Part shown: in pieces, positions 242 through 40,167 of the stretch
How positions within the stretch are numbered: the stretch's first letter is position 1
Layout of the letters: each line of letters opens with the position of its first letter
Assembly (NCBI GenBank): GCA_964035545.1
Contig: OZ037765.1
Coordinates: 32,921,504 to 32,985,503 of the forward strand
Source of the DNA: Bugula neritina
Taxonomy: Eukaryota; Animalia; Bryozoa
DNA: 64,000 nucleotides
Direction of reading: 5' to 3'
The notes under the pieces: model-generated
What the model was told of the DNA's origin: nothing
Seen by the model: the letters and a program-made list of their open reading frames with translations, nothing else
The model's database searches: none
Position numbers and translations under genes: made by a program

Positions 242-379
242 TCTCTGTCAGCTGACTCAGTTAAAGATACTAGACATAGGAGGGAATCCTCTCAACACAG
301 TACCAGATGTTGTGTCATCACTCACATCACTTAAACAGTTGAATATGAGTCACTGTAGAATATCCAGTCTACCTGAGAG
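242..379 (+). CDS. LRR cassette exon A (138 nt, two 23-aa LRRs)
   Basis: ttattacAG|tctc...gagag|GTttgt; SLCQLTQLKILDIGGNPLNTVPDVVSSLTSLKQLNMSHCRISSLPE; phase 2-2. Confidence 0.9.
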
Positions 380-3300
380 GTTTGTGCTTCACACGCCTGT
401 TACTACTTCACAACCTCATTATTACCTTGATCCCTTTAAAGTATATCTGTACACAATTTATATTATGCAAAATAATATAAAGGATATAAATGTGTAGGTG
501 AATTTTGTACCCAGCTTAAAGTTTTGGTAAAACACAATGAGATGGGAAGGGTGGAGTGCATTATGATTTGAAAACCACCCTCTCTCATGAAAAGGTGGAT
601 TATAATTTTGTTCTACTTCTATATTAAAATATCCCAGCTATAACGTAAAATTATATTGCTACTTAGCATTTTGCTAAAGTTTTCATGTGGAAAGAATACT
701 AGATATAGGTTGTTACTAAAGAAAACAGTGGTCTAGGGGCTTGAACCCGACAAAGGCCATTAGTGATGTTAGGAAGACTACCCAGTACCCAGTCACAATT
801 GCTCCTGTGCCCCATCTGAATAAGTCCTTAGCCCAGTTTAACGAAAAATCATTTCATCGGGGATTTTCTCACAGGGATGGTGATTATAAATTTTCGTCAG
901 TTTTATTTTTAAATAAAGCGAACAAACCACTTGTTATATAAAGTACTAATACCTATTAGTGACATAATTTGTTACTGATCACTTATACATCAAATCTCAT
1001 TTATCTTATTAGATGAAACAATTTAAGGTAAAATATTGTGAAGATTGCAAAAAAAATATTTTGTTTTGTCGAGAGAACTTTTCGAAGCTATAAACTGCTG
1101 CATGATATTTCATTATCTTTCTGTTGTAAATTTTTATATTATATTCTTATATTACAGTTTCTCCCAGCTGACTCAGTTAGAGACACTAGACATGGTAGGG
1201 AATCCTCTCAACACAGTACCAGATGTTGTGTCATCACTCACATCACTTAAACAGTTGAATATGAGTAACTTTGGTATATTGAGTGTACTTGAGAGGTTTG
1301 TGTGTCACATGTTCATTACTACTTCACAACATCATTATTACTACTCTCTAACTTATATTTATACACAACTTATAGTGGGGCCATTTTACTTAATTTAGTA
1401 GACACTCAAAATCTCCAGTTTTTAGCTACTTTTCACAATTTGGCTGCTAATTTATATAGGTTTTTACCCAAAACTAACAAAATGTTAACAAAGACAACTA
1501 AATATTTCAGGTTCTTTTTAGTTTTGCTTAGTTTTCCATGTTTTTCCCCAATTGTTTAAGTAATTTGGAGCTTCGAACCATTACAAAAATTCTGTGACAG
1601 TCCGCAAATCTAAGTTAACTGATTAAATGGGGAAAAACATAGGAAATCAAGCAAACTTAAGAAGAACCTGGATTATTTAGTTGTATTTGTTAATATTTTG
1701 TTAGTTTTAGGCAAAAACCTATAATAAAAATTAGCAGCCAAATTGTGAAAAATAGTGTTGTAGTTTAGCGGATTACTACAAGTGTGGTGTTATTGTGTGC
1801 TTAGACTGCTAGAGCATAGCCCTGCTACGAGATTTACTTGAGAATCGAGCAGTGGTTGAGATTAGTTGACAATTATATTTATGATACTAATTACAAACCA
1901 AGTCACATCCAGTCAAAAAGACATACAAAAGAAAAAATATATATAGTAGTACAAGTAAGGAGCTTCGCACGGTATATCTGCATGGAACGAATGAATGCCC
2001 CCGGAAGGTCCTCCTTATAAGCGATGGTCTCCTCTGATTGGTTGGTGGCTTCTGGCAGGGGGACCGCAGCAGTAGTGGCGTATTATCCTGTGCCACTACC
2101 GCAGAGAGTGTGGTGTTTTAGAATGTTAGCCCAAGCCTAACAACGAGGATGCTATAATACTTTTGTGACTATAATATAGTTACGCTTTGCATGTAAGTGT
2201 TCGTATACCTAGTTGGCGGGAGATAGCGTATATGCTTCACGGCCATCACATCTCTACCCCACCAGCAGAAAATAAAACCTTCTGATTTCAAACCTAGGTA
2301 TCAGAACATAAAAAAATTTACATATTAAAAAAATACTTTGTAATATTGGATGATTAAAATTCGTAATAAAATAATAAAACAACAATAAAAAAGTCAGCTG
2401 TCCACTGTTACAGGGCGAAAAGATTGAAGCACCACAGTCAGTGAGGTTTGCATTTCAAAAAAAATATAACAAAAGGAAAGGAGCTATAAAAAGTTATTTT
2501 AAAAAGATGAATTTTAATTATAATGTACATTTTAGTATAAGCACCGAGATTGATGGCCAGATGAACAATTTGGCCAAAAAACACAGACTATCTGCCTGGC
2601 TTAGGGTGACGGGCTCTTCCTTTCTGTCCGGCGAGAGAGTCTTTGACACTGGCCAATTCAGTGATAACAGCCAGCAGCTGAGGAGTCAGCTGGCTCAATT
2701 TCTCTTCCAGCTTGTGGATGTGCTGCTCCAAGTCACAAATAATGCTGGATGAGCTAGGAATGGGAGATGGGCACGAGTGCCTCATCTTCTTTTCGGGCTT
2801 TTCCGCACCAGCGAATGTTATGAGGACCTGGAACCTTTGACCCAGTCGAGTCGTCAAATGACAACTCAAGGAGATGGAGGTCTCGAAGAAGAGGATCCAG
2901 GGGCATGAAAAGATAAAACGGATTCCTTAGCTCTAGACAACGACCAGCTGTGATGGCCCACCGGGAGAGAAAACCTTTGACAAGCTGTGACAACTGGCCC
3001 CAGTCCTGGACTGAGGTACTGATAATTTGGAAGAAATCCTTGGACATGGCAGCATCTACTTCAGGAAGGTGGCCCAAGTGGCATTTCATTGTCTTCTGAT
3101 TTCTGATGACATAGTCACGATTGTAACTGAATTCCCCACATGGGCAAAAGATCATTGCAAAGTGTTGGACAACATGGACACGTAAGTGACCGTAAGTCAT
3201 GAGCTGTTCTTGGCATAACTTTCAGGCTGTGTTATCAGGGGGCTCGAGTGTATTGATGATATCGATAAGGATAGATGGAAGAGTCCAATCTGACCGATGA

Positions 3301-6300
3301 TAATGAGCTGTGAGCAGTCCGCCATCTTTGAGTGCAGGCTGACTTTCTATCAGAGGTAAGGATTGAGTCTCCAGTATGGGGTTATCATCCCAGCTCATCT
3401 CTGGAGAAGACGGGGCACCCCGCCATGGCAGATAGAGTGGAATCTAAAAGAGCAAAATCAGGAGTAGATCTTTACTTCCCAACCTATGTGATTCTCAACT
3501 TTTAGCAACCTGTGAACCACTTACCCCTTTATATGGCACTTGCGAGACTATTGACAACTGCCTAGACTGATTAAGAGCAATAGATTCTAGATCTCCATCT
3601 AGTAGATCGTCTGTAATTACTAAGTTCTCATTGTCAATCGCGGTTGTCAATGTCCTCAGTAAGTCAAACTTAAACTGACTGTCTGAGTTGGACTGCACTG
3701 ACATCAGATCAGTTGCTCTAATAGTAAGCATACTTGATCTGAATGACTTACCTGCAATATCAGCAATTGAGTTCGCACTTAGATTATTAAAAGCTGTTGT
3801 ATCACAGACAGGTAGCGAGCGTCTCGCTCCATGGGTTGTCAATGTGAAAAAGACCGGGCCGCGTGGTTATTGCAAATAGTACAACTTTTGTGTCATTGGC
3901 AGATTAATCCCGCGCACTGCTCCACCTTCGCATTGAGAAAACTTTTTTTTTAATTGCACAGCTTCCACACCACCTGGAATGGTTCACCGCGGTGACTTCC
4001 GCCTAGCTCTTATTTTGCCGCGTTGCAAGCAGTCACATACAAAGTCCTGTAAGTAGGACATAGGCTCATTGTTAAGGCCAATGGTGGCTTCTCCTTTGGG
4101 GCTTCTGCCACCAAAGGAGGGGTCACGGGGACGGGAGTCCACTAGGACCTCTTCCTTATTACTGTGACTGGAACCTCTATTTAGAAACGGGATCCTCATT
4201 ATCCCAGGGATGGCAGTGGGGAGCCTGGTCAGGGCAACCGGCTTGTCCGTAGGTTGGGGTGGACAACTGGGGGCTCTGGTTCTATCTACCAGCCGCGGTA
4301 CTATGATTTTATACTCAGGACCGCGTCTCACCCGTCCGGACGCTGCTGGCTGCTTCCTGGGCTCAAGTAGCAAAAGTGCTTCACCCACTGTGTTGGGGCT
4401 GACCCAATATCGCGAGCTTCGTTCTGCACAGAGATCTGCCCAGACAACCTTACCTTGTGCATATGATTGGGCAAAGCCTCGACTACTAAGTAGGACCCCA
4501 CGAACATGGGCTGTAACTTAGCTGACTGCCCGCAGTGCCTAAAATAGCTAGCCATCCAGACCCAGTCCCGCGCCTGATAGAGCAGATGCTCCTCGAAATC
4601 TTCTTCCCGCAATTGGCATTGCTTCTCACAGAGCATGTCGTGTGCGGTTCTCATTTGTTCTACCAGTTCCTCTACGTACTCATGTGCAGAGCTTTCGAGG
4701 TTCGGAACAAGGTAGGTCAGGTGGTCGGAGATACGCGTCTCTCGACCCAGCATTAGGAAGTTGGGAGTCTCAGATGTGCTCATATGAGGCATGCTGCAGT
4801 ACGCATGCATAACCTGTGAGAGCACTGTATCCCATTCCACCTGTCTTTGGTCGAGAAGCAGACTCCGGAGAGCATCACCCAGCATGCTGTTGTTCTGTTG
4901 GACAATCCCATTGCCGTGTGGGTGATACGGGGTAGTCCTGCTCTGATTCACCCTGGGCACCTTGATCGGAGTGTATCTGTTTTGGCATACCCAGATAACA
5001 GAACACATGCTGCTCTAGGGCCCAGGCCACAGTTGAGGCCGACACATCTGGAATAGCTAGAGGGTAGCCCACCAATTAAAGTGGTCTGTGAGCATCAGAA
5101 TCCAATTGTTATCTTTGGGGGGTCGCGGGCATGGGGCCTACCAGGTCAAGAGCCATCACCTGCCAAAGTCGCCCTGTGTATAGCCGTCTCTGCCTCACAC
5201 TGTCTGGAGGGCGGCTGTGTTTACTGGCCTGGTAGATTTTACACTGTTTCACTTTCAGCCGCACATCACGACCCATCCACGGCCAACACCATCAGAGTTG
5301 CAATTTCTTGACCACTCGCTGGACCCCTACATGAGCCTGTTTGTGTGTGTCCCAAAACAACTCACGACAGATAGCAAAAGAACAAACTACTCTTTCGCGC
5401 CCTGGATGTCTGTCCTTAATGCCCAACGTGATAGTCAACAGACCATCTTTATTAAACCAAAGTGAATCCCAGCGGTGGCAGAACATCTGGAACTCAGTAC
5501 ATCACTGCTGCTGCTCCTCTTCACCGAGTAGCTTCCCTTCTTTGTTAGCCTTATAAATGTTGGTTACTACTCTAGGTAGCGTTTCCTGGAGTTTACGCAG
5601 CTCCGTGACATTCTCAGCCAAAACCGGATTAGCACAGAGAGTGTTTACAGTACCCATAGAGAGCTGGTCGTGAGCTCACCTTGTTCTCGGATGTAACCAC
5701 TGAGCAGATCAAACTGTGCTTCTATGTCAGAGCGAGGGGGCTTCATCTCTCTTCTCGATATTTAAGCACTGTTTGTACCCTCCCTCAGGACGTCGGCTTA
5801 GCCCATCTGCATTGCCTTGTTTTTTCTCAGGTCGGTGTTCGATCCGATAGGAAAACTCGGCCAGGATTTCGAGCCATTGTGCAACCTGACTGGAGGGTTC
5901 GGCTTTATTGCACAACTTGATCAGCTAGGCATAGTCTGTCCACAAGCGGAACATCATCCTGTATAGATAGGGTCGGCCAACGTGTCATTTTCCCTTTTGT
6001 CTCTCATTCTGAGTGTGTCAAAGAGTCGGCGGTTTAAGAGATTTGTAGTACACCGTTAATCCAGCAGGAAGGTGGCAGCTTTGCCGGCTAATTTGCCTCG
6101 CAAGAGGTAGCTACCACCATAGGGTTGTACTCTAGTTCTCTTAGCGTTCTCGACCTCTGTAGGTGACACTCCTCGAGCCTCGAGTGTAGACGGAGCCTGT
6201 GTCTGGTGGCTATGAGGTGGTCCTAGAAGTTGCAGAGGCACGTACATAGACTCGGGGTCCTGCCTCATCTCTTGGACAGACCACTCTTCTTGTGGCCTGT

Positions 6301-9300
6301 CGAAACGGTTTCGGAGTGGGCATGTGGTGGGAACAGGCCTGTTGGTCCTATTTGGCACCTGCCACTCAGTTGGTGGCACTGTTGACATTCTCGCCGGCTG
6401 TGAGTGGCTCCCCTGTGACCAGTGACTTATCTCCAGCCTGCGGTTGGCGGAAGAGGTTGTGGGCCGCAGTGGTTCAACTCCTGTCACCTGAGTTGCAGAC
6501 ACTCCCTGCAGAGATGTCCGCGGCTCCCGCATTCTCAGCATATTGGAGCTCGTCCTGTGGCAGTATCCACCCCCAATTTCTTGGGCCTCATAGCAGGTTT
6601 AGTCATTTGGAACTGCACCAGAGCCGCCACCAACTTGCCCACCATCTCTGTCAGGTGAGCGATGTCAGCAGCTAAGGAGGAGCTGGCCATGGAGACAACG
6701 TGAGCAGTTGGTTCAGACTCAAGTTTAGTACTCCGTAGCTCTGTCTCAACCTGGCAAGAACTCACTGGGCTTTTATGCAGCTGATTAACCTGCAAATAAG
6801 CCTCACTTTCCCTGAGTGCATCCTCGGCTGTTTTTACTCCGGTCGTCAGGAACTGGTGGTGAAGTCCCAGCTCGCCTAATGACTGTACAAAAGCGTCGTA
6901 GGTGTAGCGCTCCTGGTTTGCAGGTGACAATTCGCTGTGTGTGATTTCTGTCAACCATTTTACCGTGGCGTTATGTTCTTGCAAGGGTGTGTGTGGGTCA
7001 CGCCGCAACCCCAGCAAGTGAACCCTGGCGTCAATGCCTGAGAGGCCAAATCGGGCTAGTACGGTGGCAAAAATGCTGTCAACATTGGTTCCTAACTTGT
7101 AGGGTTTGGCCTTATCTGTCAACGCCAGCCACAGTTGTAAGAGTTCGACCCTAGGTGGCCACTGAGAGACGGTGACCACATCACTGAACTCTTGAATAAA
7201 TTTTTCCACGTTTGTTTGTTTGTTTGTTTTATTTTGTCGTAGTTGGAGAAAAAAAATTAATTGAGAAAAAATAAACAAAATGACAGGGCCTATGGCGCAA
7301 TAGCACTGTAGCTAGTCGAGGCGCCGAGCCATGAATGGTTGACAGTTATATAAGATTTTTGTTTAGGTTTTTGGAAGTTTTAGCAACTCAAAGAGTTTTA
7401 TTTTTTTATCTGGAAATTTGCCATTAGGTGGTCTCTCAGGGCAAATTTGAAACCAGCCTCCCTCTCCACAGCACGAATAGAACTAGGCAATTTATTCCAT
7501 AGCGACGAACATTGGAATTCCACTCTTCGTTGACCTGCAGCAGCAGCATAGTCTTCATTACTATTAAAAATGTGGGCTTTCAGGCAGTATTTGTCACCAG
7601 ATAGTTCTCTGTCTGCTTCCTCGCTCCGCGGTGTCAGATTACTAGGAACTTCAAGGTCTACAGGCTCACCTTCAGTCTCCGTTGGCTGCGCCGGTGGCCT
7701 GTCTTCCATCAGGACATCTCTCTCAGCGCCTCCCCCGTTAGGGTCGGACATCTGGAATTTTCTCTCCTAGTAGGATGGCAATTGCATCTGCACACAGAAA
7801 TCTCACTGCTGCTACCACTGTTGTAGTTTAGCGGATTACTACAAGTGTGGTGTTATTGTGTGCTTAGACTGCTAGAGCATGGTCCTTCTACGAGGTTTAC
7901 GTGAGAGACCCAAGTAGTGGTGGATATTAGTTGGAAATTATATTTATAGTACTAATTACAAACAAAGTTGTGTCCCGTTAAAAAAACATACACAAGAAAA
8001 AATATATATAGTAGTACAAGTAATGAGCTTTGCACGATATATCCACATGGAACATATGAATGCACCTGGAAGGTCGTTCTTGTAAGTGAAAGGTCTCCTC
8101 TGCTTGGCTGGTGGGTTCTGGCAGGGGGGCCGCTGCGGTAGTGGCGTATTATTCTGCACCACTAGAGAGTGCGGTACTTTACAATGTTAGTCCAAGCGTA
8201 ACAATGATGATGCTATAATACTTTTGTTATTATTATAATATAGTTACGCTTCGTACGTAAATGTTTGATACATAGTGGGCGGGAGATAGTGTATATGCCT
8301 CATGGTCATCACAATAGCTAATAACTGAAGTTTTTGCGTGTGTACTAATTAAAGCAAAATGACCCAGTAATATAACATAAAATAATTTACAGGATATAGA
8401 ATAAAGCTGTAGTCTCTGTACTGTGGCTGAGTTCCATGTGCTATATAATGAGCTGGTAAGGATGCAAAGTGAAGATTGGAAAAGCTAATATAAACCTTTT
8501 ATAGGGCTATGAGTTGGATTATGAAAGGAGTTGTATTATTGTATATATCAAAATGTTATATAGTTTATAATAGTTGTATACATTATATGTTATTAGGAGT
8601 TGAATATACAGCACTGATGCAGTTTATATTTTATATTGTTATATTGAATTCTCTATAAGCTTAGAGCCACAGGGCGCAGGTTTTCTGCATGCGGGTCCAA
8701 ATTTTTGAAAACTCATTGTGGGAACAATCTGTCACACACAATGCGTGGGTTGTGGATGCAGAAGTTTGTTAGCTAATGATCTTGGAGTTTAACTTTACTG
8801 CTGCCTACCGACGTTTGTTTTTAAATGTATGTCATCGGCAAAGTGACTTCAGATAATATTAAAGCGGAAATGCAAACTACACAAAGCTGTTTTAATTCAG
8901 TTCAATATAAATTAAAACTTGAATTGAAATTCTGCACTCGCCGCTCAGCATACGTTATCTACATAAAAACACGCACACAACAGCCCACATGAGTAACCCT
9001 AGTAGTGTGGCTCTACACTAAGCTGACTAGGTAATTCGTAATAATTATGTAATGACTCACTATTCTTAGCAGTGAATAAAAAAGAGCTGCTTAAAACTAA
9101 CCAGCAAGCTTTGTGCAAAATCTCCTAAAACTTTCACAAATTATATTATTCAGACCTGTTTACTCTGAATATTTTGAAGCAAAACAGCATCCCGACATAA
9201 AGATGCAAATAATGAAAATATAATCTACCATGTATTGAACCAGAACTAGTATTATTCTGTCATGATAATACTGTATGAAATTTGTATTATATCCATTGCA

Positions 9301-12300
9301 TTCAATATATGAGGTACTATTATCCTGCTTTACTCAGGATGTTGTTTTGAATGATACTCAATATTTCTGTGAAATACTGAGATGCGATATTTAACTCATA
9401 CACATATCAATACTGCATATGATGCTTATATTGTATGTAGTTATTTTCTCTTCTTATATTCTGTATATATTTATGTTCCAGTATGTATCAGCTGACTCAG
9501 TTAGAGACACCAGAAGAGACACCAGACATGGAAGACAATAGCTTCACCACAGTAAGAGCTTTTGTATCATCACCTAAACAGTTGAAGATAAGTAGATCTG
9601 GAAAATTCAGTCTGCCTGAAAGGTTTGTGTGCCACATGTTTATTACTACTTCACAACATCATTATTGCCTTCTAGTTTTAAATTATAATTATACACTACT
9701 TATAGTATGTAAATTAATATACAGGATACAGAGGGTAGCTTTATATAACTTTTAGGCTTAACCTGAGATTCCTGTGTTATACAATAAACTGAATAGGGTG
9801 CAGTGTAAGTATTTATAGAGCCACCCTATCTTATGGCTATATGAGTTGAAATATGAACAAACTTGTACTTTCCTACAAGACAACAATTAGGTAAAGATTT
9901 ACACGAGTTTCAAAGCACATATATTGTATTGAGCACAAAGAAGGTTATCCACTGCCAAAATTGCCCCAGGTGATTTTAGGTAAAAATACATGGCACAGGT
10001 AAAAATGGCACTAGTAATTAAGGGCATAAATGGAAAAGTAGGAAAAAAGCCACACTAATGTTAAATTTTCACAAAGCCTCAACCCATGAAACCCAACCCA
10101 AACTCAAACTCCCATTTCCAAACCTAAATCCTCACCCCAAACACCTAACCTCACCCAAACCCTAAAATTGAAAATGTGACATTTTTTCCTACTTATCCAT
10201 TGTTATCATTTTTGCCAGTGCCATTATTACCTGTGCCATTTTTACCTGTGCCATCTTTATCAGACACCGCCACAGGTAGTTGAACCCTAGAAATGATATT
10301 GCATAGCTTCTATTTATCTCTTGTGAGAACAAAAGTAATTGTAATTGTAATATTGATTACTTTGCCATGTAATTGTAAATAATTACATTACTTTTTAACT
10401 GTAATTATAATTGTAATTGTAATTGACAAATTTTCATGTAATTGTAATTAATTACATTCCCATGTAATTGACCCCAAGTTAAAATTAATCTATATATAGC
10501 AACTATTACTTGATGAGTTGTAGAGAATGAAACTAATTGTTTACTTTGTCGCAGAGTGCACTTACATTTATATTTCTGATGTAGTACATGTAAGCACATT
10601 ATAGAAACTAGCTTATATAATTATTGTAATCAGCTTTGATAATCTAAATCCAACTGCATTGTACATTAACATTGCATTGCTATCAGTTCAGCTTTCCTAA
10701 TTGTTGTCAAATGAATATTTTGAAGTTTAATAGAGATGATGAACAGAATAGTTTGACTTTTAAGACAGTTGACTCTTTAAATATTAATTTTAGCTCAGAA
10801 TATTCTACAATATAATGGTAGATATTTATAGTTTAGACACACCACAAGATCATGGCGGTAAATGGTGACCAAGTATTTTGTGGTTTTCACTTAATAAATT
10901 ACTGACTCTTAATATTACTATTAGTCACCACTTACTATGCTCATGTTACAAGTTGTTCTTAGCTTATAGCAGTTGGTGTTATTGCAGCACTTATTTTCTT
11001 AGAGATTAAATGTTATAAAGCTGAGCTAGATTCTTTTTCTGTAAAAAGGTGTTTATAATAGAAAGTGGTTTACTTGCCTCTCATCAAAAGACAAACTCAT
11101 TGTTTAAACAGTTTCACTTTTTTTATTATTTCAAAGCTTTCTTTAGAAAATTTAACTTTTTCTCAAAATTCTTTCAAGAATAATTTCTTGTTGAATTCTC
11201 TATCTAACAAAACTTAGAAAATTTTGCAGCTGTATATTAAAAAACTCCGAAATCTTCATGAATGCATGTTAGTCCACAGCTTCCAAATATATATAATTTC
11301 AAACTCTTAACATTATACTTTTAAAAATTGCAAGAAACGGGACAAACAATTGTTACTGCCATATTTATTTATTAGATGCCGAGTTGTTTTGACTTTTAGT
11401 TTGAGTAAGCTAGCTAGGAAAAGAATACATTTTGTAGTTAAAGTTTAATTGTTCAAATTATTTGTAAGCTTCAAATAGAAATTGGTACTTCTATGTTTGC
11501 TCAAAATTTTTATTTTGTTGTTCATTCCAATTTTCTATTTCAACAAATGTGATGCTATATAGGTTAAATAAAATAATAAGTTAAAAATTTTATGTAATAG
11601 CTGATATATCTTAAAACAGTTGTGGCTTCCTGCCTATATCTGTATTGAATAAAGTAATTATGTTGTATGTGATTTTATTCTCTTCTCACTATGTATATCT
11701 TAATACTACAGTTTCAGTCAGCTGACTCAGTTAGAGATACTAAACATAGGGTGGAATCCTCTGAACACAGTACCAGATGTTGTGTCATCACTCACATCAC
11801 TTAAACAGTTGGATATGAGTGGCTGTAGTATATCCAGTCTACCTGAGAGGTTTGTGTGTCGCATGTTTATTACTACTTCACAAAATCATTTATACCTCAC
11901 TTTAAACAGGATTTATATTCAACTTGTTGTATATAGACAAGATACTACGATCAACAAGCTGGGACATACAACTAATAATTGAACATTTCTATATTATTGT
12001 AAATTATACATATTTATGTTGTTGTATACCTTTATATTGCAGTCTCTCCCAGCTGACTCAGTTAGAGAATCTAAACATAGGAGGGAATCCTCTGAACACA
12101 GTACCAGATGTTGTGTCATCACTCACATCACTTAAACAGTTGAATATGAGTAGATGTGATATATCCAGTCTACCTGAGAGGTTTGTGTGTCACATGTTTA
12201 TTACTACTTCACAACATCATTTATACCTCACTTTGAACAGTATTTATATTCAACTTATAGTATATAGACAAGATACCACAATCAACAAGCTGGGACATAC

Positions 12301-15300
12301 AAGCAATAATTGAACATTTCCATATTATTGTAAATTACACATATTTATGTTATTGTATACCTTATATTGCAGTCTCTGTCACATGACTCAGTTAGAGATA
12401 CTATAAGACATAGGAGAGAATCCTCTCAACACAGTACCAGATGTTGTGTCATCACTCACATCACTTAAACAGTTGAATATGAGTATATGTGGTATATCCA
12501 GTCTACCTAAGAGGTTTGTGCGTCACATGTTTATTACTACTTCACAACAACATTATAGTACCTCACTTTAAACAGTATTTATATTCAACTTGTTGTATAT
12601 AAAGTATAATATGGAGTAGCTATAGTCTGACTGTGCTGTGTTATACAATGAAATGGTAAGGGCGGAGTGCAATAATATGGAAATCCACCCTTGAGCATGG
12701 TCATGGATTTTAGCCAATACCACGATATTAGGAATAAAATATTCAATTATTTATAAAAAACACAAAATATTTATTCCTGCTGCATTATTGAAGTATCACA
12801 GTGCTCTATCAACAAGTTCATATTTATGCAAGTATTTAATTCAGAGTTTGATAAACATAATTATATAATCTCTAGATTTAGGGGTACATAACAGTGACTA
12901 TTGATCACAGGTTAATAATGATGAAATAGTCATAAAAAAGGTGTGAAAACAATACCAGTAATAAATAGTTATAGCATCAACTAGCTTTATTTGTCACCCA
13001 TTTTAAAAATAAAAAGAACAGCCGACACCCTAACTATTTAATATGCAAAACCTGCAGATTTCTTCATTGATAAGACGTTGCTGATTAAATTGTATAGTGA
13101 TGTATACTATGTATAGTAATATATACTATGTATAGTAATGTATACTATTTATAGTAATATGTACTATGTATAGTAATGTACACTATGTATAGTGATGTAT
13201 ACTATGTATAATGATGTATACTATGTATAGTAATGTATACTATGTATGGTATTGTGTACTATGTATAGTAATGTATACTATGTATAGTATTGTATACTAT
13301 GTTTAGTAATGTATACTATGTATAGTAATGTATACTATGTATAGTAATGTATACTATGTATAATGATGTATACTATGTATAGTAATGTATACTATGTATA
13401 GTGATGTATACTATATGTATAAAAGTATATAATATGTATAGTAATGTGTACTATGTATAGTAATGTATACTATATATAGTAATGTATAATATGTATAGTA
13501 ATGTATACTATGTATAGTAATGTATACTATATATAGTAATGTATAATATGTATAGTAATGTATACTGTGTATAGTAATGTATACTATGTATAGTAATGTA
13601 TACTATATATAGTAATGTATAATATGTATAGTAATGTATACTATGTATAGTAATGTGTACTATGCATTGTGATGTATACTATGTATGGTGATATATACTA
13701 TATATAGTATTGTATAATATGCATAGTGATGTATACTATGTATAGTAATGCATACTATATGTATATTAGTATATAATATGTATAGTAATGTATACTATGT
13801 ATAATAATGTATACTATATATAGTAATGTATAATATGTATAGTAATGTATACTGTGTATGGTATTGTGTACTATGTATAGTATTGTATACTATGTATAGT
13901 AATGTATATTATATGTATAGTAATGTATATTATGTATAGTAATGTATAATATTTGTAGTAATGTATACTATGTACAGTAATGTATACTATGTATAGTGAT
14001 GTATACTATGTATAGTGATGTATACTATGTATATATGTGATGTATACTATGTATAGTGATGTATACTATGTATAGTAGTGAGTATACTATACATAGTGAT
14101 GATATACTATGTGTAGTAATGTATACTATATGTATATATAGTGAAATAAGGATAATTCAGTAAGCTATGTAATCTAATTTTATTATTTGCATTCATATAA
14201 AGCTCCAAAAAATTTCTCTCGTGTCAATTTGACTAAATTATATCAATAAATACTAACAAACATTGTCCTTATATAGCATTGTGAGCCTCTTAAACCTCCA
14301 GCGTCTGGATATCTCTAATGGAAGGTATCCACTGAACCAGGAGCCTAAAAACCAGATCACATGTTTACCTGATAACTTCAGCCAGTTATCTAGCTTGGGA
14401 ACTCTTGACCTCAGTGGAAACGATACTCTGAAAGTTCTGACACCAGAGATAGCTGACATGCCTCTACTAACAAAATTATGTGCTGATGGTTGTGAGTCAT
14501 TGACTTCACCACCATATGAAGTTTGTCAACAAGGAGCAGGTGCCATCAAGCAATACTACACAGACATTAGGAACCATGACAGTGTAGAGGTTTCCATGGT
14601 AACTGTTGCTGTCATTGGTCAGACTATGTCTGGCAAGACTAGTCTGATTAAGACACTACAGAGTACAGATAGAACCAGAGTTCTTACTCACAGAGTAGAA
14701 GGTGGACTTGATGATGATACGACCCCAGTGTTCAAAATGGAAGATGTTTGTGTAGATAACGATGTGTTGAGATTCATTGACTTTGGAGGTCATGAAATCT
14801 ATCAGTCGACATATCAGTTTACGTTGAAACCAAATTGTATCCCAGTTGTTGTTGTGAGTTTGGAGCAGTATGAAGCCCTGCAGCATGATATTGGTGGTAA
14901 TGAGGCAGTGAGGCGACTGTATTTTGATTGGTTGTCACATCTCTACCTGACCTATCCTAACCTCGGACCTCCTAACTTGGTGTTGACTCATTTGGATAAA
15001 ATTGATGAAAGCGAGCTTGAAGACATTCAAGACAGTTTTTTTAGCCACACGAAGCATGTTTTTGAAATCATCAGTCGCGATGAAAAGAGCAAGTGGAAAA
15101 ATGGAGGTGCTTTTGCAATAATTAAACATTTTGAAGCAAAGAATATGTTCAAAGCTGAAGATATTTATAAAGTTGGAAATGCTTACTGTGAAGCTTTCAT
15201 CCAGCTAAAAAAGAGATTGCTGAGAGAGAGTAAGCAGTTTGTGAAAGCAATACCAACAACCTGGGTGAAAGTTGAACAAGCCTTGAAGAATTTCAAAAAA

Positions 15301-18300
15301 GGTTACATGTCATTCCAAGATATCTTCAGCCAGTTGTCTAGCAGCATTTCATTAACTGAAAATCAACTTGACATCATCCTGACATACATGCACAACTGTG
15401 GCATGTTGCTCTGGTACAAGGAGGATGTGGACTTGCGTCCTTACATATTCTATCACATCCCCACAGTTACTTCACTCCTCCAAGTTCTGTTTACTCATGA
15501 TGACACAGTTTGGCAGCGTCGTCTGTCAGATTTTGCTAATCCTACTTCTGCTGGTCAACAATTCCTCACACTAAATGAATACAGGTTGTTTGCTGAAAGA
15601 TTTGCTTCAACAGGAATCATGCATGGTAAGATGTTCAAACATTTGTTAAGAACCGAAACAGACTTTCAAGAGAATGCTGCAATGAGAGTTGCGGCTCAAA
15701 TTTTGCTCTCATTCAGAATAATGTATCGCTCTACACTACAGAATGAAGAGAGCTCTTTCATTGCGCCATACTTCTGCAAGGAGTTCCTTAGTGACAACTT
15801 ACCCAACACAGGGAATTGTGTCACCTTTCATGCTCAGCTACGTTTTGATGGTCTTCCACTTCCACAGTATGCCTACCACCAGCTTGCTGTGGACATGGTC
15901 AATTCTTTCTCTCAAGAGTCAGACTGCATAACAGCCAGAAATAATGGAGCTCATGTGGTGAACAAAGATGTAACCTATCAGCTTGTACATGACTACAAGT
16001 CAGGAATAGTAAACATTTGTGTTTCCTTTGACTCCAGACAAGTATGCAGAGCATGGGAAGTTCTGGTTGACATCACCAACTCCTCTATTGAATACATTGA
16101 GACCAGATGGTGTGCCTGTAAAATAGGATGTAAATTCTTCTGTGCTCACTGTGAGCTAGAACAAGACCACCACCCATTTAGCCTCATGAATCCTTCTTGG
16201 GTCCAGTACCATGGCAAGAGATCGGCGCCCTTACCTCCCTCTTTCTTGCCTAATCAGCTCAGATGTAAGAACTTTTTTATTGTTTGCATTACTACTGCTA
16301 ATAAGCAACTATCAACGTTAATTCTTTGAGCTGTGATGCTTCATATTTACATTTATGTCGATTGTCCGACTTTAGCACAGCAGCTCAATGATTATGAAGA
16401 TTTCAATGCAGAGCTTGACTACTTTAAAAATAGACGTCTCTTCTCTAGCCACAGACATCACAATGTAAATTGGATTGCTGAATCAACTGGTGGGAAGATA
16501 TTTAGATGCAAGAAAGATTCTTCCACACCTTCATGTCTCCTCAACCCTTGTGAGTACTTTATACACTCATAATATAAAAACGGTTTTGCAGTATCATTGC
16601 TTATACAAATTGTGTAGTGTTTCTGAACCTAGTTATTACATTTCTCAAAATTCACTAGTTTATTACCATAATATGTGTTGCAGGCTCCAGTTTGTCTGAA
16701 GAAGAGAGCGAATGTCTTTCAAGTTATCTCAGCAAATATCAAAAGCCCAAGTCTACAGGTACTGTATGTTCATCCTATTATACTAATGTTTGTTATAGTA
16801 ATTATAGAAAGAATCTGAGTATGAAGTAAACATATGATCAGTGTGTGAGTATTTAAAAAACTCTGAATGTATATGTATATGCAACATATACTGTGATGTA
16901 TTACTATAAAAAGTCTATAAAATAATGTAGCATATTATTATAATAATAAATTCAGGTGAGATTCAAATTGAATCTGATAATGAAGGAACTGATGCTGATA
17001 GTGATATCTCTGAACACGAAGACTTCAGCTCACCACAAGAAGCCGGTAACATCAAAATGGAAGTTTCTGAGACCAAGAAAAAAAAGATAAAACGTCTGTT
17101 CTATTCTAATGAGGTACTTTAATAAATATTTTATAGTTGTTAGGTATGAACTACATAGTTCAAATATTTTATTTATAAAGTATTATTTGTGGTGAAATAT
17201 CTTTCACTTATAAAAACATGTTGCTCTTTTGAGTATGGTAAATGCACAATGAATTTTTTCTGCTTTCTACCAACCAGTTGAGCGCAGCTGAATTTAGTAA
17301 ATTTAATTATAGAGTTCAGTTGCATTTATATTTTCATTGGTGCTGTAGAGTATTGCAGTGAATGCTGTCTGCAAAATCCCATAAAATTATTCAATCTTAT
17401 CAAACAAATAAGAGAATGATCACCAGTTGTTAAAAAAATTTATAGGTGTATAAAATGAGTGAGACAGCAAGAGGAAGAGCTCTGATTATCAACAACAATG
17501 TTTTCCGTGATAGACCCGAGCTCTATAGAGAAGGATCTGCAGTGGATGTGTCTAATATCCGAGCAGTTTTGGCACATTTGAACTTTGAAGTAGATGTGAG
17601 ACGTGACAGAACTGCTGAGGTGTCCAAACATATAATGCCATATTTTGTTATACTTGTAAACATTAGACATTTCATATTATTCCTATATACTATATTTAAT
17701 CTCATGATTTATTCACAGGAAATGCCGAAGGATATCAAAGATGAGACTCAAAACCCTGACAATGAAGACTATGGTATGCATGTCACTGTACTCATGTCTC
17801 ACGGTGGAACATTTGGTGCTCACGGAGTTCTGTATGGGACTGATGTGAAACCAGTGAAGCTTCTCGATGTCTTTGATTTGTTGTCTTCCGACAACTTCAA
17901 GCACATGGCTGGAAAACCTAAAGTTGTGATCGTGGTAGCTTGTAGGAGTGGTGAGTTGTACATATATCTTAACGCTACTCATATCATACAGGTAAATCTT
18001 TATAACGCTGAAAAGTTTACAGCTCTCCAAATGGCATGTTTTATTGTCTTTCTATGAATAAACTATTATTTTGCTTATTTTTATTTAAAATTTCTTGTAT
18101 CTTATTTCTGTACCATAGATCACTAAGTCTTGTATCTATCCCAGCAGACAGATACAATAGATAGAGTAATGCTTCTTTCACATCTATATAATATAACTAT
18201 TGGAATTTGTAGCTGCCACAGATGCCCTGATAGAGAGAGTAGAAGCTGAGTCTGAAGAGAGTTCAGCCACACAGGAAACTCAACAGGAAACTCAACAGGA

Positions 18301-34493: not shown

Positions 34494-35281
34494 CTAGAGT
34501 CCTTGTTGGGCACGCCGGTGCTTGGCTTGGCATGTACGCAGTTTTCGTTTCATACGGCATACGGATCCCTTTAGCTGGAAGAGTCCTGTTGTAGTGTTAA
34601 GTAGGTCTGGCGCCAGCTGGGTGAACTCTTCTTGTAATCGCAGGAGGCGTTCTTCTACTGTGGCTGGGCGTACTGGGTCTGGGGACGGTGTCCGTCTGCG
34701 GCGCAAGGGTGGACTGGGGGACCTGGTTCGTCTCTTCGCCGGTGTAGGGGAGATCTCTCCTTCTTCTGGATATGTAGTTTCCTCGGGGGTGTATGTGATT
34801 TGAGGGCGGTCAGACACCAACGGGGATTGTTGGCGGGCGTTGTCTAACACACGTTGGAACCCCGAGGACAGAACGGCTAATAGCATGGCCTTCTTCACCA
34901 GAGGTCGTATAAGTGTGAGGAACTCCGGGTATAGCTTAGCGTCGACCACGTAGTTTTCTCCAGGGAAACAGCCCGCCGCTCTGTGTCTGGTGACGGGGTA
35001 GGGATACACATCATTGTACCCGCAGGGGCAGAACGTCAGTAGGAGATGAGCATTGACGTGTAGTTTAAGGGAGCGGTGAGAGGCGCAATCTTCACCACAG
35101 ATCTGGCATCTCGTCCGTCCTCTGGACCCCCAGGCTGTTTCTATTTCTTCTTCTGTTTGTGGAGACACCCACCGCCAACGGCGGCGTAGTGGCTCAGGCC
35201 GGTCACCACTAGCATACTCCTCTGGATACGGAGCGGGAAGTGTTCTATCCCGTACCCTGGTTGTAGCGGGTCGAGTGTAAT
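34494..35281 (-). CDS. ORF3 of Gypsy 2: C2H2 + C2HC zinc fingers, RS/P-rich segment, coiled coil
   Basis: CQICGEDCASHRSLKLHVNAH; CPCG...H...C; RRTRSPSPPLRRRRTPSP; heptad-like VEERLLRLQEEF; preceded by a splice acceptor. Confidence 0.85.
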
Positions 35282-35595
35282 CTGAAAAAGTTTCAACAGT
35301 GTTAATACAGTACACTGCTGTGTTGTCAGCTTGAACAGCTTGGCAACTCCTAATTCAGTTACCTCGTAGAGATTTATGGTAGTGAATAGTCAGATAGAAC
35401 ACGTATTGCAATGAGATTATAAAAATCTCTAAGTCAAACTGAGTTCTTACTACGGTATTTCACTAACCTATCTCCAGCTCGATTGACTCGGTGAGTCAGA
35501 GCTGAGCGATGCAATCTAGTTTCGTATTAAGATGTAGTTAACTCACCCCACGATCTGTTGTCGTAAGACATACTGAATGTGTGAAATGGTTTGAA

Positions 35596-38500
35596 CTACT
35601 GCTTAGAAACACGTCTACTCCTGACTGCATCAGCGTATGAAAAGATCGAGCAACGTGGTTGGGGTGCGTGATTAAGACTTTGTGCACCCGGCGGATGAAT
35701 TTTATTTCTATTTCCGCCGATGTAAAAGTTGATATTTCCGTGGTGTTGACAACTCCCACATTTGCTCGATTCTTTTCTCGTACGGTTTTCCCCTAGACTT
35801 TCATGCGTGCCGCTTTTAACGCAGTCACATACGAAGTCCTTCAAGTATGCGGGGGGTTGCCTCGTACGCTGTCCCCTTTCTAGGGGGGGTGACACGCTTG
35901 CCGGTTCGTTAGTAGGGGCCTCTAATGGCGTCTCTACTTCACCGTCAGCAGTCACCTCTTCTTGTTCTCCGGATGGAGCCCCTCCCTCCGTGGGGGTTTG
36001 CACTTCCGGAACCGGCTCGGTTTCTGGAAGTGATGGAATTAGACTTGGCGGTGGCGGACACGCTTCTGTTGGTAGAAGCTGCCGCTCCTCTCTCACCAAG
36101 TTTTCTTCCCGCGGTATGACCACTTCGTATTCAGGTCCATGCCGCCGTCGCCCGCGCGTTGTTGTCTGCCTCCTGGGCTCTAACAACGGGGGGGCTTCTC
36201 CCACTCCGCCGGGGCTAGCCCAATACGGTTTCAAGCGAGACTCATTCTGGATAGATACCTGTCCTGAGCGCTCAATCTTGTACGTATGATTGGGCATAGC
36301 CTCGACAACCACGTAGGGGCCTACGAACTTAGGCTTCAGCTTATCAGCCTGTCCGCGGCGCCTACGGTAATTGACCATCCACACCTTATCTCCCCTTTGA
36401 TAGAGGGGTGGTTCATCGGAATCTTCGTGCCGCACCTTCCACTGCTGTTGGGGCAGTATCTCGTGTGCGGCCTTCATCCGTTCCACTAGTTCACTGGCAT
36501 ACTCGTGGACTGAGTTATCTTGCTCTGGAACGTGATAGGTGAGATGGTCGGGGACACGAGTCTCTCTCCCGAGCATCAAGAGGTTTGGGGTCTCACCAGT
36601 ACTGGTGTGTGGGGTGCTACGGTATGCACGCATGACTTGCGGCAACACCGTATCCCATTCCTCTTGACCTCGTCCAAGGAGGAGACTCCGGAGTGCATCA
36701 CCTAGCATCCGGTTGTTGCGCTCCACCACCCCGTTACCTTGAGGGTGGTAGGGGGTGGTCCTGCTCTGATTTACTCCCCAGAGGCGGCAAAGGTCGCTCA
36801 TCAGTTGAGACTGGAATTGAGCGCCTTGATCAGAGTGTATCTGTTCTGGGAGCCCAAAATAACAGAATACGTGTTGGTCTAGTGCCCTGGCCACTGTTGG
36901 GGCTGATGCGTCTGGGATAGCCAGAGCATCCGCCCACCTAGTAAAGTGGTCGGTTAGTACTAGGATCCAATTATTGCCTCTGGGGGTCAGGGGCATGGGT
37001 CCGACCAGGTCTACAGCGACTACTTGCCAGGGCCTACCAGCGTATAGCCTCCGCCGTCCTGCTTCACCAGGGGGGCGGCTATGCTTACTGGCCTGGCAGA
37101 TCTCACACTGTTTGACTCTGAGCCGGACATCACGCTCCATTTGTGGCCAATACCACCGAAGTCGTAATTTGGACATCACTCGCTTGACCCCTGCGTGGGC
37201 CTGCTTGTGAGTATCCCAAATCAACTCACAGCGGATGGCTGTGGGGCAGACTACCCTCTTCCTTTCCGGGTGTCTGCCGCTGGCAGCTAGAGAGATGGTT
37301 AGCAACCCATCCTGCCCGATCCGCAGCGAGTCCCAACGCTGACAGTATAGCCGGAACTCGGCGCATCCTTGTCGTATGCGTTCCTCGCTGGGTCGTCGCC
37401 CTTCCCTTTTGGCCCGGTATATGTCTGCCACGACTCCAGGCAGCTCTTCTTGGAGCTTCTTCAGCTCTCGAACATTACCGGCCAGTATAGGGTTGGCGCG
37501 GAGGTTTTGTACATCCTCCGGGGACTCATCAACTCTTTGCCTGAGTTGACCTTGATCCCAATCAAACGGTGCTCCGTGATGAGCCAGCGTCTCCAACTCG
37601 CATCGTGGGGGACCTCCATCCCTCCTCTCGATGTTGAGACACTGTTTGCAACCTCCGTCAGGTCGGCGACTCAACCCATCCGCATTGCTGTGTCTCTTGC
37701 CCGGTCGGTGTTCGATCCGGTACAAGAATTCAGCTAGGATTTCGAGCCACCGGGCGACCTGACTAGAGGGCTCTGCTCTCCTGCACAACCAGATCAGCGA
37801 GGCATGATCCGTACGCAGCCGGAACTTCCTGCCATATAGGTATGGTCTGAAGTGCTTCACTGACTTGATTACTGCCAGCAGCTCCTTGCGGGTAGTGCAG
37901 TAATTTCGTTCAGCGGGTGAGAGAGACTTGCTGTAGTAGGCTACTACTACCTCTCGGCCTTCCTGCACTTGTGACAGCACAGCGCCAACATTCTGGTCAC
38001 TGGCGTCCGTGTCAAGGATGTACTCCAGAGTGGGGTCTGGGTAGGCCAAGATGAGCGCCGTTAGTAGGCAGCCCTTGAGGCGGTCGAACGCTTCTTGTTC
38101 GACTGGAGTCCACTGCCACGTCACTCCCTTTGCGGTGAGCCGGTTTAACGGCTGGGCTATGCCCGCAAAGTCTGGTATGTATTGCCTGTAATACCCTACC
38201 AGCCCCAAGAAAACCCGGAGTCCGGTCAAGTCTTGGGGGGTGACCCAGTCTTCTACTGCCCGTACCTTTTCGGGATCCGTTGCCACGCCGTTTCGACCGA
38301 CAACGTGCCCCAGGTACTTGACCTCCGGCTGCAATAGAGCGCACTTGGAAGGTTTGAGCTTAAGACCGGCACCTCAGAGTCTCTCGAAAACCTCCTGCAG
38401 ACGACTGACATGTGTCTCGAAGTCTGGAGAGATTACGATGACATCATCGAGGTAGACCAGCAGTGTCTTCCAATGGAGTCCGCTAAGGACTTGTTCCATC

Positions 38501-40167
38501 AGCCTCTGGAAGGTGGCTGGGGCGGAGGTTAACCCGAAGGGCAGCACCTTCCACTTCCACAAACCGTCCCGTGTGATAAACGCCGCTTTCTCCTGGGCGT
38601 CGGGACTCAGAGGAACTTGCCAATAGCCGCTTAGCAAGTCTAACGTACTGAAGTACTTGCTGCCGGCTAGGGCGTCCAATGACTCGTCAATACGAGGTAG
38701 AGGGTAGGCGTCCTGTATGGTTACGCTATTGAGTTTGCGGTAGTCCACACAGAACCGCCAACTGCCGTCTTTCTTCCGGACCAGTACGACTGGCGAGCTC
38801 CACGCACTATGGGCGGGCTCTATTAGTCCCCGGTCCAGAAGATCTCGTACTTGTCGGCTAACCTCCTTCTCTTTCTTCGGCCCCAACCTGCGGGTGGGCT
38901 GCCGGACAGGGACTGTCCCTGCAGTCAGCGGTATTTCGTGTCTGACAATTCCAGTCAGTCCCACGTCATGCTCCCCGCTGCTGAACACATCACCGTAGTC
39001 GCGTAGTAACTTAGCCATAGCTTGGCGTTCCCGGTTACTCGCGCAGCCGCCACTGGCTGTTTCATATAACTCCCGGAGATGTGTTGGGACTGCCCCTCGT
39101 CCCTGAATAGGGTGTCGAGGGAGTGCCTCTGTCGCATCACCCAGCGACGGGCCTACGTCTCCCTCCTGAACAGAGTGAAAACGGCCCAGCATCGACCCAG
39201 CCGGGAGCTTGATAGGCTCGGTAAAGGGGTTGACGCACTGCACTAAGATCTCCCCTTGCTCAGTCAGCTGATTCAGACTGCTGGCATGTTGGATCTTTTC
39301 GTGCGCGCCTTCAACCACCCCGAGTCCAGAGATCCGGCTACTATTCACCCTGCAGTGAATGGTAGCCCGGGAGCGGCCTGGTATGGTACGGTTGCGTACC
39401 ACTTGCACACCTCCCACTAAAGGGCGGCCGAACTTGTCGACGCAGGCGAGTTCCCGCCTGGACATCATCATTGCAGATCTGCTAAAATCTATGTGACATC
39501 CGTGCCGTTTAAGGAACGGCATCCCGAGGATAGCATCCTCCTTGAGCTGACTGACGATGAACGTCTCTTGGATCGTTTGATCGCGGACTCGTCCCGTCCG
39601 CTCAATTATACCATAGAAGGGAAGGCACGACCCGTCAGCTAGGGTGCCGTATTCCCCTTCGTATGCTTCCATCTCGCCCCTGACCCTAGCGCTGAGGGTG
39701 TCGAAGAGTTGGCGGCTTAAGAGGTTTGTGGTACAGCCCGAATCAATGAGAAAAGTAACAGCTTTGCCTTCCAGTTTACCGGGCAAGAAATAGCTGTTCC
39801 CATGGGGCTGCACCTGAACTCTCCCTTCAGGCCTTACTCTCGCAGGGAGTACCTCCCTCGCTTTGGGTCGCGAAGGAGGTCTCTTGGGGCGGTGATAGGT
39901 AGGCCTCGGGGGTGCCGAGGCTAGATTCTCAGCTACCTTTGTGTGCTCCCATCCAGATTCTTGGACTTGTAGCCCTGTGAATCTGTTGTGAAGGGGCATA
40001 GAAAAGGCAGCCGCGGGGCGAAGCCCCTTGCTGGTCTGTCGTGGCTGTTGCCACTGTTGGTTGCCAGTACGCGGTACCCGTCTGGGTGACCTGCGTTTCT
40101 TCTTCCCTAGAGGTTTCATCGTCGGCCCGCGGAAGGTGGGAACATCTGCGGGCCGCGGTAGTTTAAC
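35596..40167 (-). CDS. pol: Pol of Gypsy 2 (PR-RT-RH-IN), -1 frameshift, one premature TGA
   Basis: FLIDSG, YLDD, TDAS, HHCC and D,D35E motifs; in-frame TGA at 38374-38376 (RL*GAGLKLKPSKC). Confidence 0.93.

Follow-up and report, generated by a model that had tools for sequence, protein, structure and literature searches.

Organization of the locus

The stretch of DNA considered here, a window of 64,000 nucleotides at positions 32,921,504-32,985,503 of the 35.6-Mb contig OZ037765.1 in the 216-Mb assembly of the bryozoan Bugula neritina, carries six similar segments (A to F) that a first-pass annotation described as mosaic cassettes. On balance, these segments are best read as serially spliced exons that each encode two leucine-rich repeats (LRRs) and that belong to one member of a clustered LRR-Roc-COR-caspase gene family, and their mosaic look as the joint outcome of unequal exchange, short gene-conversion tracts and diversifying selection. 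On the plus strand, the LRR exons are followed by a 19-bp satellite, then by an open frame with Roc and COR-A matches, and finally by a caspase-domain frame.

The standard unit of the array is a 138-nt exon (one nucleotide, 45 codons and two nucleotides) that is flanked by phase-2 introns on both sides and encodes two 23-residue LRRs. Symmetric-phase exons of this length with ag/gt flanks account for five of the seven units of this gene, as well as for most of the 61 units extracted from the family. Exon A (242-379, plus strand, as are all the exons described here) is a 138-nt, phase 2-2 unit with ag/gt flanks, as are found also at exons B (1158-1295), D (11712-11849) and E (12043-12180). When each exon was scanned singly, Pfam LRR_4 or LRR_8 was at or above cutoff in A, B, D and E, with both models above cutoff in A and LRR_4 matched in B. 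Exon C (9482-9622), a divergent open unit of 141 nt with ag/gt flanks, gave no Pfam LRR match in the same single-exon scan. Exon F (12373-12513), also 141 nt long and bounded by ag/gt, is the positional orthologue of the last LRR exon in two paralogues; it contains an in-frame TAA produced by a 3-nt insertion, and it may be skipped, represent a null allele or be a dead exon. Exons D, E and F lie with their introns in a 331-bp tandem repeat of 2.7 copies (11692-12601, plus strand; 90% matches and a score of 1493 in Tandem Repeats Finder, TRF), and a seventh unit, named Z, precedes the window start by about 400 bp.

The 19-bp satellite (13091-14142, located with TRF) occupies the intron that separates the last LRR exon from the Roc-COR exon, whose open frame spans 14263-16329 on the plus strand. 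Residues 331-396 of this frame match COR-A (PF16095) with 38.9 bits against a cutoff of 35.3, and the Roc match (PF08477) in the same frame is sub-threshold, at 22.8 bits against a cutoff of 27 (E = 1e-4); the caspase-domain exon (17446-18057, plus strand) matches Pfam Peptidase_C14 with E = 2e-21. The same layout of last LRR exon, satellite, Roc-COR exon and caspase exon was found in two paralogues within the 245 kb analyzed, and the proportion of synonymous differences (pS) between the Roc-COR exon and its paralogues is 0.133 and 0.303, with a ratio of nonsynonymous to synonymous proportions (pN/pS) of about 0.35. Because the satellite is common to the equivalent intron of three paralogous genes, being present also in the matching introns of paralogues G03 and G05 (chromosome positions 32863253-32864883 and 33010037-33010602), it predates their divergence (pS up to 0.30).

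A genome search with exon E returned at least 347 candidate units, 40 of which were scored, and a 47-nt core of the exon has 33 exact copies, all within 32.79-33.67 Mb of this contig. The 61 units analyzed here were extracted from about 300 kb, a sample that contains a minority of the 347 candidates and none from 33.03-33.08 Mb. Site states and the comparison of longest identical blocks (1485 pairs) are based on 55 units, and the maximum-likelihood (ML) tree uses exon plus flanks of all 61. Unit G05.6, which is the positional orthologue of F in a paralogue, served as the outgroup.

Read evidence consists of assembled contigs with at least 95% likeness to the window, whose locus of origin is uncertain; the compared stretch ended at 13050. 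In the two RNA-like runs (X7 and X9), coverage is confined to exons D, E and F and to the repeat at 10132-10497, with the introns empty, and contig ends coincide with the exon ends at 11849 (D) and 12180 (E). One X7 contig contains an exon end, six letters and the start of the next unit followed by the unit body, and this joining of one unit's end to another's start argues that the units are spliced in series. The LRR exons are covered by RNA-like contigs with exon-exon joins, which may derive from paralogues of 95% likeness or more. RNA-like contigs matching F from 12406 onward differ from it in their 5' part, which lacks the stop-creating insertion, and probably come from paralogues.

Chimeric exons in tandem arrays

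The description of the exons as mosaic relied in part on two sites that occur in all four combinations, and this four-gamete pattern is real: at exon position 2 and at position 52, the third base of the core Leu codon, A has C and C, B has T and C, D has T and G, and E has C and G. Among the 55 units, G at position 52 is restricted to D and E, and position 2 is polymorphic throughout the family (C/T = 42:12), so that the pair needs just one extra C/T change and could be explained by a single such event at a hypervariable site, between two sister tandem copies. That explanation belongs to a broader alternative in which, beyond the duplication of whole units, homoplasy alone would create the mosaic look: recurrent mutation at a dozen hypervariable codons under diversifying or convergent selection, combined with purifying selection (including selection for splicing) on the framework and on the first ~40 intron bases. 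The concentration of variation at the x positions of the LRRs, with two to four common states per site, fits this alternative, which is nevertheless rather unlikely as a full account, given the evidence from the tandem units described below.

Exon F had been taken for a product of exchange, since its upstream intron is almost identical to that of E and it carries variants typical of A. The likeness of the two introns stands (90.9% identity over 320 nt), and the variants TGT, GAC and CTC are present in F as in A, but they do not testify to an exchange with A. Both GAC and CTC are found in the majority of the family and in the outgroup G05.6, and the derived states are those common to D and E. 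The possibility that F is a recombinant of E and A was therefore rejected, its states being those of the outgroup and the family consensus; that these states are ancestral also counts in favor of homoplasy alone.

In exon E, the upstream intron is homologous to that of F and not to that of D, and the downstream intron is homologous to that of D throughout and to that of F for only about 115 nt. E thus has F-type DNA on its left side and D-type DNA on its right, which is the layout that unequal exchange between two neighboring units would leave. When sites are polarized with G05.6, E and F have derived states in common at -10, -4 and e5, plus e41 (e, exon position; signed numbers, intron positions), D and E have them in common at e32, e52, +42 and +43, and a single site, +77, unites D with F. 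These sites give an indication of a junction within E at e6-e31, where an F-type 5' end would give way to D-type sequence from about position 32 on, and E is thus a probable chimera.

Two younger trios of tandem units in paralogues offer clearer cases. In units G07.1-3, the two introns are 98.9-99.3% identical and the exons differ at 13-14 sites, with a middle exon that agrees with unit 3 as far as e41 and with unit 1 from e47 onward; the switch at e42-46 is significant (Fisher p = 0.0065). In units G03.1-3, the introns are 97.6-97.8% identical, and the middle exon switches around e86-97, inside the invariant core. Across the two trios, G03.1-3 and G07.1-3, the exons differ at 13-17 of 138 sites, an excess over the introns with p = 6e-6 and p = 0.0018. 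Furthermore, the exons of G03.1 and G03.2 show the replacements AGT/TCC (Ser) and CTG/TTA (Leu), which amount to five silent differences, next to adjoining introns that differ by 1-6%. Such multi-base synonymous swaps beside near-identical introns are not explained by point mutation combined with selection at the protein level, and together with the exon-internal switch points of the two trios they argue against homoplasy alone. A further observation in the same direction comes from the positional orthologues G03.3 and G06.10, which are 2% apart in both distal flanks and yet have different intron haplotypes at +46..+88, where the patch in G06.10 is DEF-like.

The third codon of the exon (positions 5-7; for example, 246-248, 11716-11718 and 12047-12049) is mostly Ser, encoded by AGT or by TCT/TCC, and TGT (Cys) is a possible intermediate between these codon families. 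As both Ser codon families are common and scattered over all arrays, the third codon is a useful marker of exchange.

Chimeric exons could in principle be created in silico, if collapsed or mis-joined repeats had yielded false junctions, and identical exon cores of 47-70 nt do break short-read contigs. However, contigs from the source DNA run (X1) span the boundaries between unique flank and exon at D, E and F with zero mismatches, from which it follows that the mosaics are not assembly artefacts; moreover, the units lie on a 35.6-Mb contig and the same architecture recurs in several arrays. The likelihood of an artefact is accordingly very slight.

Discordant histories of exons and introns

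Distances in intron segments are strongly correlated among themselves (Mantel r = 0.50-0.71), and the two variable exon blocks are correlated with each other at r = 0.31. Correlations between exon blocks and the adjoining intron are 0.05-0.09 and not significant, and by this measure the histories of exon and intron are uncoupled.

Long identical exon blocks occur on diverged introns more often than expected. Among 1136 far pairs, defined as unit pairs with proximal introns at least 15% diverged, 15 share identical exon blocks of at least 70 nt, against a mean of 4.9 under a null that shuffles whole codons among units (P = 0.004), and eight share blocks of at least 87 nt, against a mean of 0.7, with none of 500 replicates reaching eight. 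This 11-fold excess of the longest blocks is a further argument against homoplasy alone. The far pairs with long shared blocks include A and G07.7 (88 nt) and A and B (70 nt).

The block shared by A (281-350) and B (1197-1266), which covers exon positions 40-109 on the plus strand, had been reported as 69 nt; it is real, with a length of 70 nt. Identity over a family-wide core is a possible trivial cause, as the longest identical block per pair has a median of 45 nt and the 47-nt center of the A-B block is found family-wide, and the invariant core is by itself no mark of a recent exchange between A and B. That cause can be only partly rejected: the exact 70-mer is present in just three of 61 units, namely A, B and G07.7, which lies 650 kb away, 2.7% of the 1485 pairs reach 70 nt, and the chance of such a block per pair is 0.0044 under the codon-shuffling null. 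A permutation test on longest runs, of the Sawyer/GENECONV type, was discarded as invalid, because the invariant core clusters sites of low variability; 45% of all pairs reached p < 0.05 in this test.

The 88-nt block shared by A and G07.7 spans seven hypervariable codons, and the introns of these two units are 23% diverged. Changes private to A number 1 in 138 exon sites and 10 in 80 intron sites (p = 0.0002), and its proximal intron (380-470, plus strand) is an orphan, diverged copy of the conserved intron block of the family, with a best other match genome-wide of 77%. By comparison, the intron of B has only 2 differences in 80 from units 650 kb distant. Either the exon of A was overwritten from a unit like B or G07.7, or the exon alone stayed constrained.

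A number of points weigh against recombination as the source of these patterns. The junction in E rests on eight polarized sites (Fisher p = 0.14), and the right-hand part of E is about equally distant from D and F. The pairwise homoplasy index (PHI), which the first-pass annotation had proposed as a check, gives p = 0.001 for the six units of this gene, a result that could come from region-specific homoplasy alone. With all 55 units there is no effect of distance in exon, intron or silent sites (p = 0.4-0.99), and about half of the informative site pairs are incompatible at every distance. The nonsignificant family-wide result agrees with homoplasy, since saturating homoplasy at hypervariable sites would give the same outcome, and it neither supports nor excludes recombination. 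In addition, the appearance of shared exon haplotypes could arise if the same residues were selected repeatedly, the sample comprises 61 of at least 347 candidate units, and all unit comparisons are within a single species' assembly. With these points set against the layout of D, E and F, the paralogue trios and the long blocks shared on diverged introns, recombination between repeat exons, as originally proposed, is supported, mostly by evidence from the wider family.

Probable reshuffling rather than homogenization

The companion proposal, that exons are homogenized faster than their flanks, is not supported. Pairwise comparison of D, E and F gives a divergence of 8.7-10.9% for the exon, 8.9% for third positions and 7.5-10% for the first 80 bases of the intron, so that exon and intron divergence are equal in these units, an outcome that the first-pass annotation had itself named as refuting. 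Lineage-specific changes counted with the outgroup amount, per lineage, to 3.9% of exon and 3.1% of intron positions. Between Z and B, the exons are the more diverged part, with differences at 22 of 138 exon sites (15.9%) and 4 of 80 intron sites (5%; p = 0.017). In the ML tree of 61 units, Z, A, B, C and the DEF group do not come together, and each groups with units of other genes. For instance, exon C clusters with G02.9, G02.12 and G02.15, the 'last' units of three other arrays (support 97), DEF clusters with G05.6 (support 94), and several other clades are positional across paralogous genes. These divergences and the tree argue that the array evolved mainly by duplication of genes and units and not by concerted evolution within the gene; the exons are reshuffled, not homogenized.

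Pervasive concerted evolution nevertheless deserves consideration as an alternative. It would have frequent conversion homogenize the framework and proximal intron relative to the distal flanks, with the invariant core as a crossover platform, while selection maintains the differences at contact codons. In its favor, framework pS (0.02-0.06) and proximal-intron divergence (0.01-0.13) do not grow with distal divergence (0.035-0.18), and the Roc-COR exon of the same genes has reached a pS of 0.13-0.30. The exact copies of the 47-nt core extend across 0.9 Mb, and a pristine exon stands beside a decayed intron in A. Against it are the observations that the units of this gene are not most closely related to one another, that positional orthology is kept between paralogues, that D, E and F show no deficit of exon divergence, that the exons of Z and B are more diverged than their introns, and that C-type exons escaped homogenization despite their consensus-like introns. 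As for the core as a crossover platform, which had also been proposed, the switch in the G03 trio does lie inside it, but those in G07 (e42-46) and probably in E (e6-31) lie outside. Taken as a whole, this alternative is improbable.

Rates of change and probable selection on contact codons

Twelve codons of the exon are hypervariable by amino-acid entropy. Ten of them are the x positions of the two LxxLxLxxN/C motifs, and the remaining pair opens the exon as its codons 1 and 2; the x positions of an LRR form its concave face. Rates at these codons were compared with those elsewhere in unit pairs with both distal flanks alignable, which are positional orthologues. At distal-intron divergences of 0.035, 0.076, 0.134 and 0.176, hypervariable pN is 0.16, 0.16, 0.34 and 0.37, framework pS is 0.037, 0.020, 0.060 and 0.031, and divergence of intron positions +7..+80 is 0.035, 0.012, 0.051 and 0.127, in that order. 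From these rates, contact codons evolve 2-5 times faster than distal introns, and the framework and the first ~40-80 intron bases evolve about 5 times slower.

The slow change of the framework and proximal intron reflects either constraint or family-wide conversion. Silent divergence lies below that of the flanks in the framework and proximal intron family-wide, and in A, but not in D, E and F or in Z and B, and constraint would give the same signal. The first ~42 intron bases are almost invariant across the 55 units, even beside C but not beside A; in this window the conserved blocks lie at 380-425, 1296-1340, 9623-9667, 11850-11895, 12181-12225 and 12514-12560. Exon C itself is 22-29% diverged from other units, yet has about one mismatch to the consensus in the first 44 intron bases, counted by eye, and this pairing of a diverged C-type exon with a consensus-like proximal intron speaks for constraint and suggests, in agreement with homoplasy alone, that the intron block is constrained in its own right. 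Such constraint is not universal, however, because the proximal intron of D, E and F changes at a roughly neutral pace and that of A changes faster still; 4 changes were observed in this block against 0.9 expected under five-fold constraint (P = 0.013), and to this extent the homoplasy explanation is weakened.

The conserved intron block holds a 9-nt string that is the exact reverse complement, as judged by eye, of a 9-nt string in the invariant exon core; both strings are invariant, and the chance of such complementarity is estimated at about 0.02.

Proposed origin of the mosaic exons

The explanation that we favor, as moderately probable, combines three processes. Unequal crossing-over or tandem duplication between neighboring units, with breakpoints inside or just beside the exon, would generate new chimeric exons; E would be one of these, and the middle exons of the two younger paralogue trios show the process more clearly. 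Occasional short tracts of ectopic gene conversion would place an exon haplotype on an unrelated intron background, as may have happened for the central block of A, B and G07.7. Strong diversifying selection would act on about 12 codons at the x positions of LxxLxLxxN, over a strongly conserved framework. The tandem structure, the exon-internal switch points in the paralogues, the excess of long shared blocks, the rate contrasts and the absence of within-gene clustering are demonstrated here, and the recombination mechanisms themselves and the selection are inferred.

A bolder proposal, which we regard as doubtful at best, is that the ~0.9-Mb cluster acts as a germline generator of diversity for animal LRR-ROCO-caspase sensors, in which short-tract conversion and unequal exchange, seeded by the exon core and the ~40-nt intron block, would re-deal ligand-contact modules among dozens of exons. 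Were this so, the cluster would be a heritable analogue of cassette-based receptor diversification, and the conserved intron block might be a control element for recombination or splicing, not neutral DNA.

Comparison with other receptor systems

The closest parallel lies in the LRR-ROCO genes of brown algae, in which each LRR is a 72-nt phase-2 exon, the exons are intensely shuffled, inactivated exons are interspersed with active ones, and positive selection acts on concave-face positions (Zambounis et al. 2012, PMC3341825; Teng et al. 2024, PMC11378527). The bryozoan gene shares with these the LRR-Roc-COR order, tandem LRR exons of equal length that are in phase (phase 2), duplication and shuffling of exons, stop-bearing exons among active ones, positive selection on concave-face x positions and a proposed role as an immune receptor. 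Unlike the algal genes, it belongs to an animal, has two LRRs per exon (138 nt) instead of one (72 nt), carries a caspase exon after Roc-COR, and has ~40-80 nt of downstream intron conserved along with the exon; in addition, no antisense intronic LRR copies were seen in this window.

Plant loci for nucleotide-binding LRR receptors (NLRs) and receptor-like LRR proteins (Cf-4/9, RPP5, flax L and lettuce RGC2) consist of clustered paralogues in which unequal crossing-over and patchy sequence exchange create chimeric LRR blocks, with diversifying selection on xxLxLxx residues and birth-and-death evolution rather than full homogenization. Plant LRR domains mostly lie in one large exon, so that exchange is intra-exonic, in contrast to the exchanged unit here, which is an exon plus its proximal intron. 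Lamprey variable lymphocyte receptors (VLRs) are assembled somatically from non-coding flanking LRR cassettes, which are joined by copy choice through short homology. The bryozoan units resemble these in having near-identical LRR modules, an invariant framework and variable concave-face residues, but they have splice sites and are apparently spliced in series, and there is no sign here of somatic rearrangement. Mutually exclusive exons of the Dscam type, too, are similar to one another and arranged in tandem, with conserved intron sequence close by. Here, in contrast, the exon length is a multiple of three and an RNA-like contig, of uncertain locus of origin, joins two units; an LRR domain needs many repeats.

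A search of the available literature found no description of such an LRR-ROCO-caspase family in bryozoans, which is weak evidence of absence. The gene is an animal example of the shuffling of LRR exons already known from brown-alga and plant receptor genes, and it shows the same logic of diversification in an animal family whose members couple a caspase to an LRR sensor and a Roc-COR switch. It offers a tractable case for studying how invertebrates without adaptive immunity generate receptor variety, with chimeric trios that are dated by nearly identical introns and a defined set of 12 fast-evolving codons, and it corrects the simpler reading of exons kept alike by conversion.

Insertions and other features

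As the first-pass annotation had noted, the intron downstream of B contains both an element resembling a miniature inverted-repeat transposable element (MITE) and a long terminal repeat (LTR) element with clearly diverged LTRs. The MITE-like palindromic element (1426-1755) has inverted arms that are 79% complementary over 333 columns. It is directly followed by the old LTR retroelement (1756-8313), whose LTRs (1756-2250 and 7819-8313) are 84.0% identical over 501 columns (p = 0.139; Kimura two-parameter distance, K2P = 0.156). This element has TG..CA ends, a 4-bp ATAG target duplication and only broken open reading frames (ORFs) on the minus strand, two of which were tested and gave no Pfam match. 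Farther along the window, two Ty3/gypsy-type retroelements at 34494-41063 and 44264-48376 have protease, reverse transcriptase, RNase H and integrase domains, one of them with an open frame of 1370 aa.

The segment at 10132-10497, in the intron between C and D, is covered to very high depth by each of the four runs, the RNA-like ones included, and has many loose ends; it resembles a high-copy transposable element or another repeat that is expressed. In the source run, one DNA contig leads from 12188 back to 12030, a step back of 159, at a depth of 175 compared with about 120 elsewhere; possible explanations are a variant missing from the assembly, a paralogue whose spacer is very short and a repeat artefact of the contig.

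Elsewhere on the chromosome, fifteen LRR units lie in several arrays at 32810644-32842640 (loci L034-L037), around which no Roc-COR or caspase match was found (tblastn at 1e-10, over the 245 kb analyzed), and these units may belong to genes with another effector or to LRR-only genes. Finally, in a second DNA sample (X3, from 2016 and labelled as a symbiont metagenome), where coverage is thin and contigs are short, ~3-5% of intron positions differ over 11039-11742, which indicates high population divergence or a cryptic lineage.

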